Part shown: positions 3,733 through 13,422 of the stretch, in pieces
Position numbering within the stretch: position 1 is the first letter of the stretch
Layout: every line of letters starts with the position of its first letter
Source of the DNA: Epithemia pelagica
Lineage: Eukaryota > Protista > Bacillariophyta
DNA: 64,000 nucleotides
Direction: 5' to 3'
NCBI GenBank assembly: GCA_946965045.2
Contig: OX337237.1
Location: 2,356,001-2,420,000 of the forward strand
Notes under the pieces: model-generated
Databases searched by the model: none
What the model was told of the DNA's origin: nothing
The model's input: only the letters and a program-made list of their open reading frames with translations
Program-made: the position numbers and the translations under genes

Positions 3733-6700
3733 ATGTCGAGCTACGCTGACGGCCACTATGGTCGTGGCGGTGGTGGTGGGAACAATGACAATTATGACAA
3801 TCGTCCCAGAGGAAGAGACCGCTACCCAGGAAATGGAGGGAATTATGGGAGAGGTAAGAGTAAAGAAAAAAGACAAAAGATCCACGTTACCCGCAAAACC
3901 CGAAATGCCCCTGACTTGTGTAAGTTCTCTCTTAACTCAGGTGACTTCGAACGAGACCGGTCGAGAGATCACCGTGGTCCTGGGAATGCGCCTGGTTCAG
4001 TCATGGTGGAGGCTAATCTTTTCAAAGTGAAATTTCATCGGGAAGGAGCTCAAACGTTTTACAAGTACCATCTTCAGATGAATTACTCCCACAGACCACT
4101 CCTGAAGAATGAAGAAGGACAGCCCATGAAGGACGAGAACGGAAGGCGTTTGTATGGAGAACGAGAGATCGGAAAGTCAATCTTTGATGATCGCGACTTG
4201 TCGAAGGACACGCCGGAAGCACAGCGGAAACAAGAACGCCGGAACCGTTCCTCCCCCTTGTCTGAGCGGGTTATTCGAGGCCTTCAGCATGCCCTTCGCG
4301 AACAAGGAAGTAGCTTCCAGTTCGTTTCAGATGGATCGAGGAGTGCCTATTCTATCCATAAGCTTGAAGGATTGACGGAAGAACCGGATACCCGACCAGC
4401 GAGGAAGAAGAGATCGAATCAGAACAAGTCGCAAGCGGGTATTTATGGACCTGCGGATCAAGGAGGATCGGCGCCTGATCCGGAACAAAGTCCTATCATT
4501 AAACCATGGAGAATCTTTGATCCCATAAGGGTCCGCCGTGAGTGTGATGACGAAGAGGCGAAAGATGATCCTGATGCTCATAAGCGAAAGAACTTTGTAT
4601 GGATTCAGGTTAAAATGACCCTTGTTGGTAAAGTGGAGGCGACCGTTAATCAGGAAGGAAAGGTTGAGGAAGCTTTGAACGACCAAGACGCGTCTTTGGG
4701 TCAAGCAATCAATTTGTGCATGAACAACGCCATGCTCGGTCATATGATGGCACTCCAACGAGGTCCCAAGTTTTTCTACTTCAAAGAAGATCTTTTCTCT
4801 CACTTGACTCGTCAATGGGGATTCGACCCGCAGAGTATGCCTGTATATGGTATGCTTCAGAGCGCCAGAAAAACTGCGGATGGATCTTATCGCATTTTGG
4901 CAGACCTTGGACTAGGTAAGAAAGAGATCTGGACCGTTCAAACCACGAGGACCTTGTGTATTTAACGGCGCGTTCTTTTTGTCATTAGGGTGGAAGAGGC
5001 CTGAGTTCGACAGGAATGGGCCAATTCCCATCTTGGATCCTGCACGTGGGACGCTGGCCAACGTGCCCCTTGGACGTGGTAACATACGCGACGCTTTAAG
5101 TGAAGAGGTCCCACATGGAATGCGGCGAGAGGTCGCTACAGCCCTTAGCAAGCTCACTTTCCACATAAAGTATACGGTGGGAGAAGAGTGGATTAACATG
5201 ATGATGACAAAACCCATTAGAGGGATGGATGACACAACCTCTGACGCGGATAAGAGAAAAGAACTTTCCAAAAGGGCCAAACGAGTCTTCCGGAACAAAA
5301 AAATGATGAAGCCGGTAGATGGAAACCCAGAGACTAGTATTAGATGGGCTGCTGATGATCCGGAGATATATTCCTTTGATTATGATTACAAGGGAAAAGA
5401 TGGTCAGTTTGAAGGGCTTCGGCCAACTACAGTGTACGAGTATTTTCTCCGTCGACACTTCATTCGACTGAAGTACCCCAAGATGCCTCTCGTGCAGATA
5501 GGCCAAAAAGAATTTCTTCCTGTCGAACTCCTCTTTCAAGCTCAAGGTGCCGCCAAGATAATGCAAAAGGCCGATCAAGTCACCAGGTTCGCTCTTAGTT
5601 TCAACGATGAGTTTTCCTGCGGAAAAAGGATTCGTGCGATCACCGATCTCTACATGAGACCAGATATGCTTGGGAACGATAGCCAGGGTCCCATTGGAAA
5701 ACTACTACGCAGCGTTGGTATGTCCCTTGATCCCGCTCCATTGAAGCTTGAAGCGAAGGCTTTGAAACCTCCAAAGCTCGTATTTGCTAATAACCAGGTA
5801 GTAAGCAATCGCGATGGTTCCTGGAGCTTGCAAGAAAGAAGGCAAGATGTAGGATTCCACAAGTCGGCCACACTCCACTCTTTTGCTGTTGTCAATATGA
5901 GTGGCGACCGAGATAATGAAAGTCTTCCTCGAGTTGATGAAGTACTTCCTGCTAAGCTTTTTGGTGCCCTTTCCAGACATGGTGTCGATACTCCTTTAAT
6001 CTCCAATGGAGCTGATGCTGAATGGTGGTGGAAGAAAGTAGAGGTTGCGATGCATCCATCGAATCCAGAATTCCGCGAGGGATTCATTAGCGCAAAAGAA
6101 CGTGCGCGTAGAGCATTCATGGACGAAACTCTTGAGCACAATCTTTTTTTTCACACGCTGGCTCTCATTGACAATGGAAACGGGGAGAAGGTGTGCAAGG
6201 AAGTCGCAGTTTTCCCGCCAGACTTGGTGACGACACAATTCACGATTCCAAATGGCATGTACGGAGTCCTAGAATTTGAGCATATGAGAAACGAGAAGGC
6301 GTCTCATTATGCAGACATTGAAGGGCGATCTGTGGATGCGTGGCTGTGGTATCAGACCGAAGATTTGAAGTGTGTATGCGCTTTCAACGTCCAAATGAAA
6401 GGAGGACGTGTCCATATTTGGTGGAATAATTCGTGGCAACCGGTCAACGGGCGTTTGACACCAGTTTTTAAGGACGAACATAAAAGAATTCTTCCCCGTG
6501 ATCGAGTGCAGCTGCAGCAGGATATAATGCTGGACGGAGTGGAACGAAGAGTTGGGCATCTGGTTGACCTTCAGTCAATTGAATGTCCTTCTATCGTATT
6601 TGTCATTTTGCCACAGAAATCTGGATCCACAGATACCTATTATAAGAGTAAATTGATGTCATACCTGGAGTTGGGTGTCAACTGTAAGTGCCAACACCGA

Positions 6701-8275
6701 GAAGTCATTTTCTTTGTATGAATTGCTCACTTGTTGTTCAATTGATTCCAGCTCAAGTCATTGTCATGGAATCATTTACAAAACAAAAGCGAAAGGAACA
6801 GTATTGCTCAAACATTGCCTTGAAATTGAACACTAAACTGGCGACTCTCAAAGGCAAGCAATGTGCATGGTCCTGGGAACGATGCCATGAGAACGGCACG
6901 CCAGACAAGGCAAGACAATGGTTGGACGAGACCCCAACTTTGGTGATTGGTTTGGCAAAGTCGTCAGGTACGTGATAACCATTGCGCTATATTATCGAAA
7001 CAGAGCATGGAGATTCTTTAGTCTAACACAAGTGAAATGATACTTCAGGCCAAGGCCAGGGTGCGAAGATGATTGTGGTGGGTACAGCTTATGTTGCTGT
7101 TGGTGGTCAAATGTTCTGCTTTGAAAGCCGAGCCCAGGCCAAGTCAGCAGTAATTGATCCCACAATCGTAAAGAGGATTGTGAAAGTACGTGAATTGGAG
7201 GCATGAAATCCGAAGTTTGGATACATGTTCTCACAACTGTTAAACTTGTATTATCATGTCATTAGAACTTGGTCGTTCAGTTCTATCGTTGCAATGGTGT
7301 CCCTCCTGAACGGATTGTGGTCGTTCGGTCAGGTGAACACGATGGTCTTTTTAAAGGTACGACGAAATGCTTCAGATCTGAATGATGGCAAAGTCTTATC
7401 CAATTTCCCTTGCCGTGAATACAGAAATTATCGAGAAAGAAATCAGGGGCATTCGTCAAGGCTATCTTGAGGCGAAACCGGGTCAGAATGAGTGCGAACA
7501 CTGCGGAGGGGAGGTAGGCTGTCACCATTGTTGTCCATTGATAACGTTTTTGGTAGCTCAAGGAGGAGGTAGCACTCGCCATAACATCAAACTTGTTCCA
7601 CAACGTGGCAGCAACAATGGCGGGAAACCAAATCCAAATGTGCCTTCGGGAACATGTGTCGACGGTGAACAACTACTCATGCCCACCAATTTGGAGGTAA
7701 AACATCACGAGGACCAGATGCGGGAAAACTCGGCTGGAATGGACATGTACCATGCTACAAGTGAGCGCACATCTGACTTTTTCCTTGTCGCACACGGCGG
7801 TTTAAAGGGAACTTCAAACGGAGTCTATTATCGAGTGATTCTGAATGAGAATCGCGTGTTCCGAAAACAAGATTCCATGAACCCGCTTGACAGAGAAACT
7901 CTACAGCAGCTGATCTTCTCTTTGAGTTTTATTTATGGTAAGTCACCGAATGAACAGCGGGTCGGTTTAACATACTGAGTGTTGTTCTTAAGCTCATGAC
8001 TCATGATTACTTTGGTAGGAAAAGCCACGAAGTCTCCTCGTGATTCGGCTTTGATAAAATGCTCTGAGTTACTGGCCAACATTATTCACGGTATGATTGG
8101 CCATATGGACAGAGACCAGGAGAGCCGTTTTCTGGAACGGTGGATGACGGATGATAACGTGGAAGCGTTCGGTGATAGTCTTCTTCCCGCATTTGGTCCG
8201 TACGCTTCCGATATCATTGATGAAGAACAGCAGATCCGTCTCAAAGATGCTTTCCGCCCCCACACTCTTTCGTAA
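3733..8275 (+). CDS. AGO: Argonaute protein, divergent and predicted slicer-inactive; exons 3733-4915, 4989-6683, 6752-6967, 7049-7185, 7266-7356, 7425-7937, 8019-8275 (4092 nt, 1363 aa)
   Basis: Gly/Arg-rich N-terminus; N-domain 'VMVEANLFKV'; PAZ 'TVYEYFLRRHFIRLKYPKMPLVQIGQKEFLPVELL'; L2 'LEAKALKPPKLVF...DGSWSL'; MID 'IVFVILP...YYKSK...GVNSQVI...NIALKLNTKL'; PIWI 'QFYRCNGVPPERIVVVRSG', 'PSGTCVD', 'FFLVAHGGLKGTS..VYYRVILNEN', 'LQQLIFSLSFIYGKATKS'. All six introns are GT-AG (68-81 bp) and splice phases close consistently. Confidence 0.93.
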
Positions 8276-8926
8276 AATGATAGTTTTCGACAACAGTTCT
8301 CAGGCTGTGACTGAAGGTTTTCTTTGTTTCGACGAAAAGGGACGACTTGAATTCTCACTGACCTTGTTAGGGAACTGTTTTGTTCCATTTATTTGACTAC
8401 ATCTCTGTGAATACGACAAAACGTGACCAAAAAGCTTTATTAGTTTTCTTCAAGTTACTCGTTACGTAACCAAACCAATTATGCATGTACTTTCGGAGAC
8501 AATGCGTGAATTACAACTACGTAATGCCCTACGGGTATAGTTTACGGTTTCTTGTTGAGGAACCACCAACGATTGTTTCTGAACATCCATGTGACCTGAG
8601 AAATTTCAACTCAACTTTTCTAGCTCGGTGCTCATGATCACAATGGGACAAGGCGTACCCAGCAAGTGATGAACGAGTCTTCCAACAAGTAAATCCGCAA
8701 ATCTTTCTCCTCCACACACCACGGTCGAAATTGTACATCATGCGAAATCGGCCGAGCATGACCAGGCACTGAGGTGTGTCCAATGTGCCTTGAATGGGCA
8801 ATTGGTCAGAAAAGAGTCAAAAGATTATAACTGCCGGGATCGTTTCAAAAATGTTGTTGAAAGGGTGTGTAAGAGGCGATGGCCCTGCGATTATTTGTAC
8901 CGTGCAAAGTGGTCAAACGTCGTCTT

Positions 8927-10240
8927 TCACCTTCGCGAAATCAAGATATGCTCTCGATGGAGGTCAAGGCATTCAGGATTCGTGCAAATGGGAATCCGGC
9001 AGACTTTGCACAATTTGGATGTTTTGGTTTTGACTTGTGTGGTTGTCTTGCAGAGCTGACAAAGTTTACGCTTCTTTCTTGGTTTGAGATTGCCATTCTT
9101 TTCTGTCAAATCAGTCTCAACTAATCGGTGTCGTCGTAGGTGTTTCTCTTTGTACTGGAGAAGTAGATTGCGAAGTTCAACGTAATGCTGAGGTGTTTCC
9201 AACAATTTGGCAACATCTTCTACCAACGGTCGAAGATGTGCATAGGCCTCGCCCCGACAAAGCATTTCGTGGACGCGTTGTTCCTCCATGGGGTCTAACG
9301 GGTGTTGTTGCACTTGCCTGGCCAAATCGTTGAGCCCTATGGTGTCGTCGTTGTCGTCCGCCTCCTCATCTTCTTCGTCTCCTGCCTCCAACCGAACGTG
9401 GCCTCGGTGCCAACCATGTCCTGGACCAAACTCTTTTAAGAACCATCGCGAATGAACTCGATCCCAATAAACCAAAAACCGAAACAGACAGCCGCAACTG
9501 GAACCATTTATACTCTTTGTCTGTGAATGAAACAGGAGTGTTCAGGATTTCCATCAGTAAACCAATACTTGTTTCGTTGTTCGTTCGGAGAGTGTGTGGT
9601 CGACACATACCTGAAATTTGAGATTGTGTACGCATCGAAATATGATTTTATACTCCGCCTTTTCCCATCCCATGGATATTTGAAATCCAGCACGTTGGCA
9701 GGGCTTCTTGAAAAGTGGCGCAATATGTTGCCGACGGAAGTCGTCCGTATTTTGATTGTACCAGGAAGGAAGGTACAATTTCCTTCCTTCGTTGCCATGC
9801 GACCATTTTCCGATGGAGGACATGATATTGAACTGAATCAACGTGTCATCGTGAAGCGACGTGGCGATAGGAATGGAAATTTCTTCGACTTCCCAACAGT
9901 GATCGGCTGGTATGACTGCGACAGCTGTTGTCGTTGTTGGTGGATCACCACCACCTGGTTGCAATGACGGCGAATCAAAGGACAACTCGGTGTAATCGTT
10001 TTCCTGCTCCTCCTCATCTTCATTATTTTCATTGTATCCAGTACAATCATTGTTTCTTGGATGATATTTTTCTTCCTCATTGTGCTGGCCTTCTTGTTGC
10101 GTCGTGGAGAAATTGTCATGGTCGCTTTTGTCCTGTCCAGAGCTATGATTTCTCGTCTCGAAATTCTGGAATCCTCTTTTCTTCTTGGTGCATAAACTGG
10201 CTGAATCTATGGTGCTGCATATCAATGCAGCGGGATCCAT
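8927..10240 (-). CDS. Transposase-derived DNA-binding protein: FAR1/MULE-type (WRKY-GCM1-like) Zn domain plus C-terminal piggyBac-like Cys-rich domain, no DDE core; exons 10240-9611 and 9520-8927 (~407 aa)
   Basis: A phase-0 90-bp intron (GTATGT...CACAG, 9521-9610) joins two ORFs into 'IIFRCVHNLKFQ|TKSINGSSCGCLFRFLVYWDRVHSRWFLKEFGPGHGWHRGH' (C..C..H..H pattern). The C-terminus is 'KPRKKRKLCQLC-x11-CKVC-x4-C-x4-C-x3-H'. Confidence 0.6.
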
Positions 10241-10716
10241 GCTTTTGCAAAGCTTGGAGTTCTACCTCAGTTCCTTTCGTTTGTCATCATTGTGCAGTCC
10301 AATGCTGCGAAACGCAGAAATCTGATCCATGTAGCCCCCTCTTCCTCCTGTCCCCGCCCCCTGGAAAAGGGTGCGCTGATCGCCATTTTTCCTCTCTCTG
10401 GGGGTGCGGATGCGGACGCCGTTTGTTTTTGGTTGCCCCTGGATCTTTGTTGTGTTGTGTAATGCAAAATGATAAGTGCGAGAATCCGATTGGTGCATCA
10501 TTCTCTATATCGTTGCTTCCTTCCAGTCTGCACCAATCAAGCTTAGAAAGATGAGGTTGAGCACCAGCCTATGAACCCTCTACCAGTGGTTGTACGAGCT
10601 TGGTATCTTCAGGTCACATCGGACCATGAGCTTCCATTCGCTGGAACGATTAGAATGGCAATGAGTGCGTTTGCGGGATGGGTTGAGACCAACTTGGTCG
10701 ATTTTGCGAGAGGTCA

Positions 10717-11880
10717 ATGGGGATACACAACAATGCGCACAGGAAAATTCGAAATTCTCGGGTGGAGCGATTCCTCTCGTCTGTCTGTCGCTCCATCCCC
10801 CCACGACGTACCCCGACCACCGAAACTCCCATGCCCTACCAAGGATCCATATTGGTTTCCATTGAGCAAACGAGATCGTTCAGAGCATTCCGAGGAGACA
10901 GTACCATGGTAGACTTTGAACAAGATGGTCGTCCAGACCAAGATGTTGACGAAGAGCAGACATCCAAAGAGAGACAGGAGCAGCCAACCACGTCCGCAAA
11001 GGAAACACCACCGAATGAGAAAGATACGGCTGGGGACGACGAGGCCGAGGGAAAATCCAAACGCCGACGCAAACGCAAGCGCAAAACGAACAAGGGAGAA
11101 GAGGCAGCCACAACGAAGGATCCAGCAGGATCGTCCGAATCAACGACTGATCCGGTCGCATCGTCCGTCTCGGATGAAGTGAATCGTACTGTGTACATGG
11201 AAGGAATTCCCTTTACCTGCACACCGGACGACGTTCGAGCGTTTTTGGCGGACAATGGCGGATTGAACCATTTGGTGGATCTCCGTTTGCCCGTATGGCA
11301 GGACTCGGGACGTTTGCGAGGATATGGACACGTGGTCTTGTCCACGGCTCAAGACTACGAAACAGCCTTGGCCATGAATGGGAAACATTACATGGGGAAC
11401 CGGTACATTTCCCTCCGACCCGCTCAAGCACCAAAATCGAATACACCAGCCTCCATGGCCGCTGTGGATCATTCCAATCCATCCAAAACCCTAATGTTGG
11501 CCAACCTTTCCTATACGGCTACCGAAGACGACATTGCCCAAGCTATAGAACCATATTTGACCAAGGGAGGAATTGCGGACGGTGGAATTCGCGTTGTCCG
11601 ACATTCTCATACCGGCCGTTCCAAAGGGATTGGCTACGTTGAGTTTGTGGAGTTAAAAAGTGCGCAACACGTTATGCAACAACACACGAATCATTCGCCA
11701 TTGGTGATTTGCGGTCGTCCGTGCCGATTAGACTATGATCATGGACGTATTCGAGGATCATTTCGTACGGCCAATGGACAATTGTGGCACAAGGAACACA
11801 AGCAGCAACAACAGTACGATGCCTCTTCTTCCAGAGGGAATGACAAGACTTTCAAGAAACCGCGAGCGTCCATGGACTGA
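10717..11880 (+). CDS. Two-RRM RNA-binding protein (nucleolin/NSR1/RBM34-like); true start may be a downstream ATG
   Basis: RNP2 'VYMEGIP' with RNP1 'RGYGHVVL', and RNP2 'LMLANLSY' with RNP1 'KGIGYVEF'; basic NLS 'KRRRKRKRK'. Confidence 0.85.
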   Translation: MGIHNNAHRKIRNSRVERFLSSVCRSIPPRRTPTTETPMPYQGSILVSIEQTRSFRAFRGDSTMVDFEQDGRPDQDVDEEQTSKERQEQPTTSAKETPPNEKDTAGDDEAEGKSKRRRKRKRKTNKGEEAATTKDPAGSSESTTDPVASSVSDEVNRTVYMEGIPFTCTPDDVRAFLADNGGLNHLVDLRLPVWQDSGRLRGYGHVVLSTAQDYETALAMNGKHYMGNRYISLRPAQAPKSNTPASMAAVDHSNPSKTLMLANLSYTATEDDIAQAIEPYLTKGGIADGGIRVVRHSHTGRSKGIGYVEFVELKSAQHVMQQHTNHSPLVICGRPCRLDYDHGRIRGSFRTANGQLWHKEHKQQQQYDASSSRGNDKTFKKPRASMD

Positions 11881-13422
11881 CTTGCGTTTCAGTCGAATGC
11901 CAAAATTTCTCATCATGTCCACAACGCGTTTTGTCGGGAACGACGGGTACTGGGATTCAATTCCATATGCCCATCGTCGAGCTCTACAGCGACTGTGTCA
12001 GGAACCGGGACGATTGATTGTTTTATTGTCACAAGGACTAGACGACAGTGGCTTGCGATTTGAACTTTGATCTGACAGAGGAGGGAACCAGGATCTCAGA
12101 ACACAGCGAAACGAAGAACGCGGATATGCTTGCTGCACTTCCAAGTGGCAAACTACAAGTATAACGTGGCCGCCACAAAGTGAAATTCGAAATTACCTCG
12201 CGAGATCCCCGAAAGCCCACCTCATTCTTGTCAGAAGGCAACCTACGTAGCTAAATTCTTTCCCTCAGTCATCAGTCATCAGAATATTTCACTCATTGCT
12301 TCCATCACTGCCGTTTTATGATTGATGTCTATGATCGTGTTTCGTCGAAGTCATCAGAATATGGCATAGATCCATTCCTTCCATCGCTTCCGTGTTTCTG
12401 ATTGCGGTAGCCATGTCATATCACCGGCGAGGGTTTATTGGATGATTGCATGAGGTAGACGAACGACAGTGTCAAGTCTGATGCATTTACAAGAGACTTT
12501 AGACATAGACAACTGACATGGTTCGATCACAGAAAGACACACAACCAAAAAATGAGCGGTCACCTATCACACGCGAACGCTGGATTTTGGATAGCGTTGC
12601 AGTTGCACACACGTGGATCTCGCGCAAGCAAGGCCACATCCAGTCCCATGTGCGACTGCGTCAGCCAAAAGTTCTCGTTTTTATTCGGCAGCAACACGTG
12701 TTCTTCCTTCCTCTTCAAAAATTCTTCTCCTTTGCTGGGCATCAATTCGACACACTCCCCAGTGCTTATTTTTGATTCATAGACAGGGAGTACTTGATGC
12801 GAATTACTTTAGTTTATTTTAGCTTTAACCCTAAGATTTTATACTTGGAACCTATCGCTAAGGACTACAGCAATAAAAACAAGAACGATGCTTCCGAAAA
12901 ACGAACACGCATCATCCTTCCGTCGTACGCGTCGATTGTTGTCCGTCTGTGGCTATCATTCGTGGCCAAAGCAGAACCACATACCCATACCTCGATTCTT
13001 CTTATTACAAAAAATGTCGCTCGTACATTTTTACGGCCACTGCTGCGTTTGAGAACATGAGGAGTATGCGACCGACACCACGAATCTCAGCTTACGAATC
13101 ACGACGACCACTCAGCCTGTTGGATTCTAGATGGGGATGGTTCTTTCACTACTCGTTGCCTCATGGAGCGTCGCTTTTGATTGGGTGAGGGTCTCTTCTC
13201 TCTACAATACGCCTCGTCGCGAACACACAAATTAAAGCGTTCTCCTTCCTCCAATGGAAATGGACGGCTCCGTGTAGTACGTACTCGTTCTCCTCTGTGT
13301 TGCCCTATTGCCATCTTGCGATCCAATTGCTGATCTCTCCTGCCACGCTACGGCGTTTGGATTCCTCTAGGTCGTCCCTTGAGACATCTCTCCTGCTTGC
13401 ACACGAAGATATTTACTAGGAG

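Follow-up and report, generated by a model that had tools for sequence, protein, structure and literature searches.

An Argonaute gene of the diatom Epithemia pelagica predicted to have lost slicing while keeping its guide-binding pocket

A gene for a divergent Argonaute (AGO) lies on the forward strand of contig OX337237.1 of the diatom Epithemia pelagica (assembly GCA_946965045.2), within the 64,000-nt stretch from 2,356,001 to 2,420,000 that was analysed here and is called the window; coordinates are those of the window. A first-pass annotation, made from the letters alone, had described an intact frame with six introns, the loss of all four residues of the PIWI catalytic tetrad, and the retention of the PAZ domain and of the MID residues that hold the guide 5′ phosphate. 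The gene, its exons and its larger parts are as follows.

3733-8275, plus strand: Argonaute gene, start codon to stop codon
3733-3853, 3941-4915, 4989-6683, 6752-6967, 7049-7185, 7266-7356, 7425-7937 and 8019-8275, plus strand: exons by RNA evidence (contig joints in sequencing run X4)
3733-3855, plus strand: disordered, RGG-like N-terminal tract rich in Gly, Arg, Tyr and Asn (from the translation; the family consensus has a like composition)
3854-3940, plus strand: seventh intron, 87 nt, GT..AG, in frame (X4 contig joint 3851>3939, cut +2)
5252-5548, plus strand: PAZ domain (Pfam PF02170, exon 2 translation, E=4.7e-7, 30.2 bits against a cut-off of 28.8)
6122-6577, plus strand: all-beta insertion of 152 aa in MID, found throughout the diatom AGO clade
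6578-8086, introns within the span, plus strand: PIWI domain, end of exon 2 to exon 7 (Pfam Piwi matches on exon pieces)

The gene model was first built manually from the list of open reading frames and the raw sequence. It has seven exons, the first being 3733-4915, with six GT..AG introns of 68-81 nt, 1363 codons and one terminal stop; exon numbers in this text are those of this model. Four public sequencing runs of the organism, X1 to X4, cover the locus, and none is recorded as RNA. In X4 the gene is represented by one contig of 5959 nt, in which each of the six predicted introns is replaced by a GT..AG joint at exactly the predicted place. The open frame and the six joints of the first-pass annotation thus stand, and its intron count has to be raised to seven: the product is 1334 aa by the transcript, or 1363 aa if the first intron (3854-3940) is retained. 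That additional intron falls within the Gly/Arg-rich, low-complexity N-terminal tract, and the N-terminus itself agrees with the family consensus MSxYG.... The DNA runs of the same organism, X1-X3, hold the locus in unspliced form, and X3 contains chimeric contigs flanked by GATC (at 6845, 7155 and 7375), the kind of artefact that a Hi-C library produces. Because the joints of the X4 contig match every predicted intron, the gene is transcribed, and the splice form in X4 does not restore the DEDH tetrad. The gene is intact, spliced and expressed.

The X4 contig also extends about 1.9 kb beyond 8400 and, if colinear, spans a convergent minus-strand gene at 8927-10240. The transcripts of the two genes may overlap at their 3′ ends, or may have been merged by the assembler.

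Pfam searches with the separate exon translations found ArgoN (E=2e-5, below the cut-off), PAZ, ArgoL2 (weak) and three Piwi pieces, and the product is therefore a divergent eukaryotic Argonaute. Its full-length orthologues score 83-91 bits against Pfam Piwi, for which the cut-off is 28.9. A 16-member family profile searched against the Protein Data Bank (PDB) matched human AGO2 at E=4e-64, over PAZ and MID-PIWI; identity to human AGOs in MID-PIWI is only 22-25%. The domain order N-PAZ-MID-PIWI, that of the eukaryotic Argonaute/PIWI superfamily, is kept. The MID-PIWI region of an Epithemia orthologue (P0167:900-1365) was modelled with AlphaFold2 from a 26-row alignment, giving a predicted local distance difference test score (pLDDT) of 80 and a predicted template modelling score (pTM) of 0.84. 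The top 50 PDB matches of this model were all Argonautes, human AGO1-4 and Arabidopsis AGO10 (E 4e-19 to 6e-16; template modelling score 0.53-0.59 over about 400 columns). On this model the RNase H-like PIWI fold, packed on a Rossmann-like MID, is kept and the chemistry alone is gone.

Slicing is known to require the DEDH/D tetrad, an established requirement that has been summarised elsewhere (PMC6284064). The catalytic columns were placed with the 16-member family profile against human AGO2 and with a MAFFT alignment of 36 sequences that included 11 canonical AGOs. Profile columns were found opposite the AGO2 motifs GADVTH (D597), RQEIIQD (E637) and YRDGVSEGQF (D669) and the YYAH region (H807). 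The canonical AGOs in the MAFFT alignment read D-E-D-H or D-E-D-D throughout, and the window protein reads A, A, S, E. These four codons, together with the other short features of the MID-PIWI half, are given here.

6638-6837, across the intron 6684-6751, plus strand: MID 5′-phosphate pocket (Y 6638-6640, K 6650-6652, Q 6754-6756, K 6823-6825, K 6835-6837)
6955-6957, plus strand: Ala at AGO2 D597, the first catalytic Asp (motif IGLAK, 6946-6960)
7147-7149, plus strand: Ala at AGO2 E637, the glutamate finger (motif RAQAKSAVID, 7129-7158)
7329-7331, plus strand: Ser at AGO2 D669, the second catalytic Asp (motif VVRSGE, 7320-7337)
7490-7534, plus strand: Cys-rich PIWI insertion C-x2-C-x5-C-x2-CC, between the D669 strand and the PLITF strand
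8066-8068, plus strand: Glu at AGO2 H807, the fourth tetrad residue (motif IKCSELLA, 8054-8077)
8252-8272, plus strand: C-terminal FRPHTLS, a clade-type ending (PFRPHxSA) in place of the canonical M-Y/F-F/Y-x

The substitutions reported by the first-pass annotation were thus recovered by both the profile and the alignment at the codons it had named, and a check of the translation found each motif it had quoted where it had been placed. Its account of the guide-holding parts was also borne out. The pocket residues Y, K, Q, K and K, the last two within the LKLNTK stretch at 6820-6837, align with Y529, K533, Q545, K566 and K570 of human AGO2, and PAZ, which it had called retained, scores above its Pfam cut-off. 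The C-terminus had been said to lack the usual terminal motif. The motif does differ; the ending is a conserved one of the clade and is not a loss.

Relatives were sought in an exhaustive HMMER search of exon 2 against 1.84 billion representatives, which returned 154 proteins at E≤0.001, four of them at E≤1e-30. Others were added by a region-restricted word search and by contig look-ups. There are five close relatives, of about 1360 aa each: P0167, the modelled orthologue, which is a hypothetical protein of Epithemia clementina at NCBI (47% identical); P0004 (41% identical), a full-length, uninterrupted open reading frame on a 4.3-kb Logan contig that is probably a transcript; P0152 (37% identical), likewise full-length and uninterrupted, from the MMETSP transcriptome of Entomoneis paludosa; and the ENA genomic loci L001 and L004. 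The wider family consists of proteins of 1000-1350 aa from Nitzschia, Thalassionema, Thalassiothrix, Thalassiosira and marine metatranscriptomes. All named sources in the clade are diatoms (Epithemia, Entomoneis, Nitzschia, Thalassionema, Thalassiothrix and Thalassiosira). From the exon 2 region a maximum-likelihood tree was built by quick search on 39 rows and 530 columns, with branch support from the Shimodaira-Hasegawa-like approximate likelihood ratio test (SH-aLRT) only. In it the 27 rows of diatom sequences are set apart by a long branch, with an SH-aLRT value of 100, from the 12 rows of canonical AGOs. The window protein and its five close relatives form a six-row sub-clade with a support of 99 and a stem of 0.65 changes per site; the deeper branching inside the diatom clade is unresolved.

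The state of the tetrad was tabulated for 25 diatom-clade AGOs, that of the window and 24 others. D597 is replaced in 23 of the 24 others. P0204 alone keeps the Asp; the sequence that clusters with it, nearly identical otherwise, has Asn there. His at H807 occurs in none of the 24; Asp stands there in P0016 and P0167, and P0176 is truncated before the site. Loss of the first Asp and of the last His is therefore, as far as the sequences tell, a trait of the whole clade and not of the window gene. The second Asp divides the clade: outside the sub-clade D669 remains in 16 of 20 rows and E637 in 8 of 20, and in the sub-clade of about 1360 aa D669 is lost in 6/6 members, which always have Ser or Cys at that position. 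By this alignment it is only the loss of the second Asp, and in the present gene of the Glu finger, that sets the sub-clade of the window gene apart.

Within the sub-clade all six members are without D597, D669 and H807. Five have none of the four tetrad residues, and E637 persists only in L001. The replacements vary, with A or T at the first site, A, H, P or E at the second, S or C at the third, and E, A, S, D or G at the fourth; on the alignment this is the pattern of a site long released from constraint. The PIWI motifs flanking the tetrad (NVPSGTCVD, GGLKGTS and GKATKxPRDSAL) stay conserved. The five pocket residues are kept in all 25 rows of the table, save for one change of Q to S. From the alignment the clade can be summarised by four traits, which are not a published definition: the lack of Asp at D597 and of His at H807, a MID insertion of about 150 aa and an ending of the PFRPHxSA type. 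The window protein has all four, with Ala at D597, Glu at H807, the MID insertion and the FRPHTLS end.

The upkeep of the gene can be judged at two depths. L002, a locus in an ENA assembly, matches the window at 98.5% of nucleotides over 12.7 kb. It is the same gene on the other haplotype, since its alleles match exactly the alternative ones in the DNA runs of the organism. A 3-nt deletion at 3769 and some 14 single-base changes separate the two haplotypes over window positions 3769-8321. The coding differences comprise 6 synonymous and 6 non-synonymous changes, which give a synonymous divergence (dS) of 0.0069 and a non-synonymous divergence (dN) of 0.0019 per site, hence a dN/dS of 0.28; none of the non-synonymous changes falls in PIWI. 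Between the sub-clade genes the proportion of synonymous differences (pS) is 0.70-0.83, which is saturated, and that of non-synonymous differences (pN) lies at 0.34-0.40 for exon 2 and at 0.19-0.31 for the part of PIWI encoded by exon 6. All six sub-clade genes have open frames, and the intron positions around PIWI are common to them. On these comparisons the gene is under purifying selection and is not a pseudogene. The first-pass annotation had taken the gene to be maintained, and this is upheld by the intact frames of the relatives, by the allelic ratio and by a pN far below the saturated pS. It had also named what would speak against it, among other things splicing that brings back DEDH, relaxed selection, or a lack of expression; the X4 transcript contig is spliced and carries the substituted tetrad, and selection is purifying.

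L004 lies at 4800-9200 of a 2.2-Mb contig (ENA ERZ21939226 ctg1360l), in the same ENA assembly as L002. Its product is 39-57% identical to the window protein, with T, P, C and D at the tetrad positions. The locus is probably another slicer-dead paralogue of the same genome. Support for this is indirect and comes from L002, which belongs to the same assembly and carries the alternative alleles of the organism. A comparison of L004 with the window found no shared repeats, and the GC content was uninformative.

Two insertions mark the clade. The one in MID takes up about 180 positions of the family profile, compared with about 28 residues in human AGO2, and has in the family alignment an invariant His in a P-S/T-H motif. 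Modelled alone with AlphaFold2 it is all-beta (pLDDT 91.4, pTM 0.83). Foldseek found nothing for it at E <0.1, and the ESM Atlas gave no convincing match. In an exhaustive structural scan with VIA-align the best Z was only 4.7; values of 3.4-4.7 over about 50 residues lie below the level at which that tool is trusted, and within its weak top 50 most of the higher-ranked rows were Tudor, SAWADEE, PWWP and chromo-barrel (SH3-like) domains. The Cys-rich PIWI loop is present in many clade members and absent from canonical AGOs and from L004. It could be a zinc knuckle, with a putative role in binding zinc.

Upstream of the Argonaute gene, on the minus strand at 1315-2934, lies a gene for an alpha/beta-hydrolase (Abhydrolase_3) whose long tail is rich in Ser, Thr and Ala; this gene also adjoins the AGO gene on L002. 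On L001 a piggyBac-type gene (DDE_Tnp_1_7 plus SAP, L001:9847-12411) lies just downstream of AGO. A tblastx comparison of window positions 8301-12500 with L001, L003 and L004 found nothing at 1e-6, and linkage to the downstream transposase-derived gene of the window is not conserved. The AGO-transposase neighbourhood is thus not a conserved pair, because the downstream gene of L001 has no tblastx similarity to that of the window.

The gene is best read, and with good probability, as a functional and expressed member of the diatom-specific Argonaute clade, one which has itself lost slicing, has kept the parts that hold a guide, and would silence its targets by way of small RNAs without cutting them. 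The protein is predicted to be unable to slice, as all four residues needed to hold the catalytic metals are missing. PAZ would hold the 3′ end of the guide, and the Y-K-Q-K-K pocket of MID its 5′ phosphate. Small RNAs made by Dicer would be loaded into the protein, complementary transcripts would be found by base pairing, and the target would be silenced by recruited proteins with no cleavage. Small-RNA loading, the lack of slicing in vitro and the downstream pathway are what we infer from the sequence.

As to the output of such a protein, nuclear, transposon-directed heterochromatin formation seems more likely by analogy with what has been reported for other diatoms; the alternative would be translational repression or partner-mediated decay. 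In Phaeodactylum tricornutum, Dicer yields small RNAs of 26-31 nt from transposons that carry repressive marks (PMC11910954), and its small RNAs have been reported as required for H3K9me3 and H3K27me3 on transposons (PMC12203969). Knock-downs in diatoms can leave the target mRNA in place, and a review remarks that the canonical mechanism seems not to apply (PMC11910954).

Several points weigh against reading the gene as a guided, non-slicing silencer. The choice between nucleus and cytoplasm comes from the context of the pathway and not from evidence on this gene. The allelic dN/dS is based on 12 differences only, and the saturation of cross-species dS permits only an upper-bound argument. The structure model is that of a 47%-identical Epithemia orthologue and not of the window protein. 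With a C-terminus unlike that of canonical AGOs, the protein has a pocket that does not fully match theirs. R812 of human AGO2 is a further contact to the 5′ phosphate, and in the alignment its equivalent is not conserved in the diatom clade.

A bolder version can be drawn from the insertion in MID. The diatom AGO clade would have abandoned slicing and gained in MID a Tudor-like barrel, a reader that couples the guide RNA to methylated histones or to methyl-arginine partners. The window sub-clade, with all four catalytic residues gone, would be its end point, and the window gene and L004 would probably make two slicer-dead paralogues in one species. It would be an elegant mechanism for an Argonaute that no longer slices to carry its own reader of methyl marks; the reading as a whole is improbable.

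Some of the same features would suit a protein that loads no small RNA and serves instead as a guide-independent scaffold, a platform for binding RNA or proteins. The clade is without the canonical C-terminal motif and an R812 equivalent, MID carries the 152-aa insertion, and PAZ is barely over its Pfam threshold. Such a scaffold is nevertheless improbable: the five 5′-phosphate contacts, kept over 25 rows with one Q-to-S change, are hard to explain without a 5′-phosphorylated ligand, and the whole N-PAZ-MID-PIWI architecture has been kept with them.

It is very unlikely that the protein is still a nuclease whose active site has been rebuilt by other acidic residues or by a bound partner. Both metal-binding Asp sites are altered, to Ala/Thr and Ser/Cys, in all six sub-clade members. 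The Glu that replaces His at the fourth site of the window gene, and the Asp found there in two relatives, could be taken as such residues, but acidic replacements are not conserved at any one of the four positions. The clade has unique insertions near the PIWI core, the Cys-rich loop among them; against a rebuilt site, the PIWI alignment holds no new invariant acidic column (its invariants are N, K, R, E214, T and G), and the need for the tetrad is established (PMC6284064).

With all four catalytic residues gone, replacements that differ among relatives, and equal raw allelic counts of 6 non-synonymous and 6 synonymous changes, the gene might be thought to be decaying or recently dead, its tetrad lost by relaxed selection on a redundant AGO copy. 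This is scarcely credible for a frame open over 1334/1363 codons whose seven introns are correctly spliced in a transcript contig, and which has five intact counterparts of about 1360 aa among the other genes or transcripts of the sub-clade. Counted per site the allelic ratio is 0.28, with PIWI free of non-synonymous change, cross-species pN is far below a saturated pS, and the MID pocket is invariant but for the one change of Q to S. An annotation artefact, in which other splicing or another reading frame would bring back the canonical motifs, has next to no chance: the model was initially built by eye from sequence alone, but the X4 joints lie exactly as predicted around every catalytic-site exon, and orthologues from transcriptomes and from NCBI annotation carry the same substituted motifs.

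Diatoms are major primary producers in which knock-down by RNA interference is a routine tool. In the table of 25 AGOs the pocket is almost always kept, the catalytic residues at the first and fourth positions have nearly always been lost, and one sub-clade is tetrad-less under purifying selection. At the level of sequence, this pattern gives grounds for expecting that the whole group silences without slicing, and the table names concrete proteins to test. It does not announce a new kind of system, since non-slicing Argonautes are common and the poor catalytic site of diatom AGOs was reported in 2009.

Human AGO1, AGO3 and AGO4 silence by way of a guide RNA without the need to cut, by recruiting partners. 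They have been solved with guide RNA and are the best structural and profile matches of the diatom protein. They differ in that most or all of their tetrad is kept and their length is about 860 aa, whereas in the diatom protein all four residues are missing, MID carries a 152-aa insertion and PIWI a Cys-rich loop, and the C-terminus is a different one. The WAGO proteins of nematodes (group 3) are a lineage-specific expansion of AGOs without catalytic residues that silence without slicing. No close kinship with them came to light in the present analysis, which was not aimed at one. The diatom proteins are set apart from them in the tree of De Riso et al. (2009; PMC2724275), and the diatom pocket residues are of the type that binds a 5′ monophosphate. 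The AGOs of brown algae and oomycetes belong to the same larger lineage, the stramenopiles, and have the same domain plan. However, those of Ectocarpus and other brown algae keep the full DEDH tetrad (PMC12867755), and those of oomycetes group with AGO-like proteins, with diatom AGOs outside the main groups (PMC6284064).

The nearest known counterparts are the diatom proteins themselves. A single AGO-like protein was identified by De Riso et al. (2009) in each of two diatoms, Pt2_47611 in P. tricornutum and Tp3_1029 in Thalassiosira pseudonana. Their endonuclease site was described as 'only poorly conserved', and their clade was remote from AGO-like and PIWI-like proteins and from nematode group 3 (WAGO) (PMC2724275). 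By the description in that paper they resemble the window protein in their diatom origin and their N-PAZ-MID-PIWI order, and the same separation in the tree and the same poor catalytic site are seen here for 24 other diatom sequences. The first-pass annotation had listed, among the grounds for rejecting its reading, that the gene might belong to a diatom AGO clade on record. This ground applies in part: the diatom-specific clade was already described, and the window gene is a new, extreme member of it. What seems to be new is the breadth of the pattern over 25 sequences, the tetrad-less sub-clade of 1360-aa proteins that is without the second Asp, and the conservation of a guide pocket beside a dead active site.

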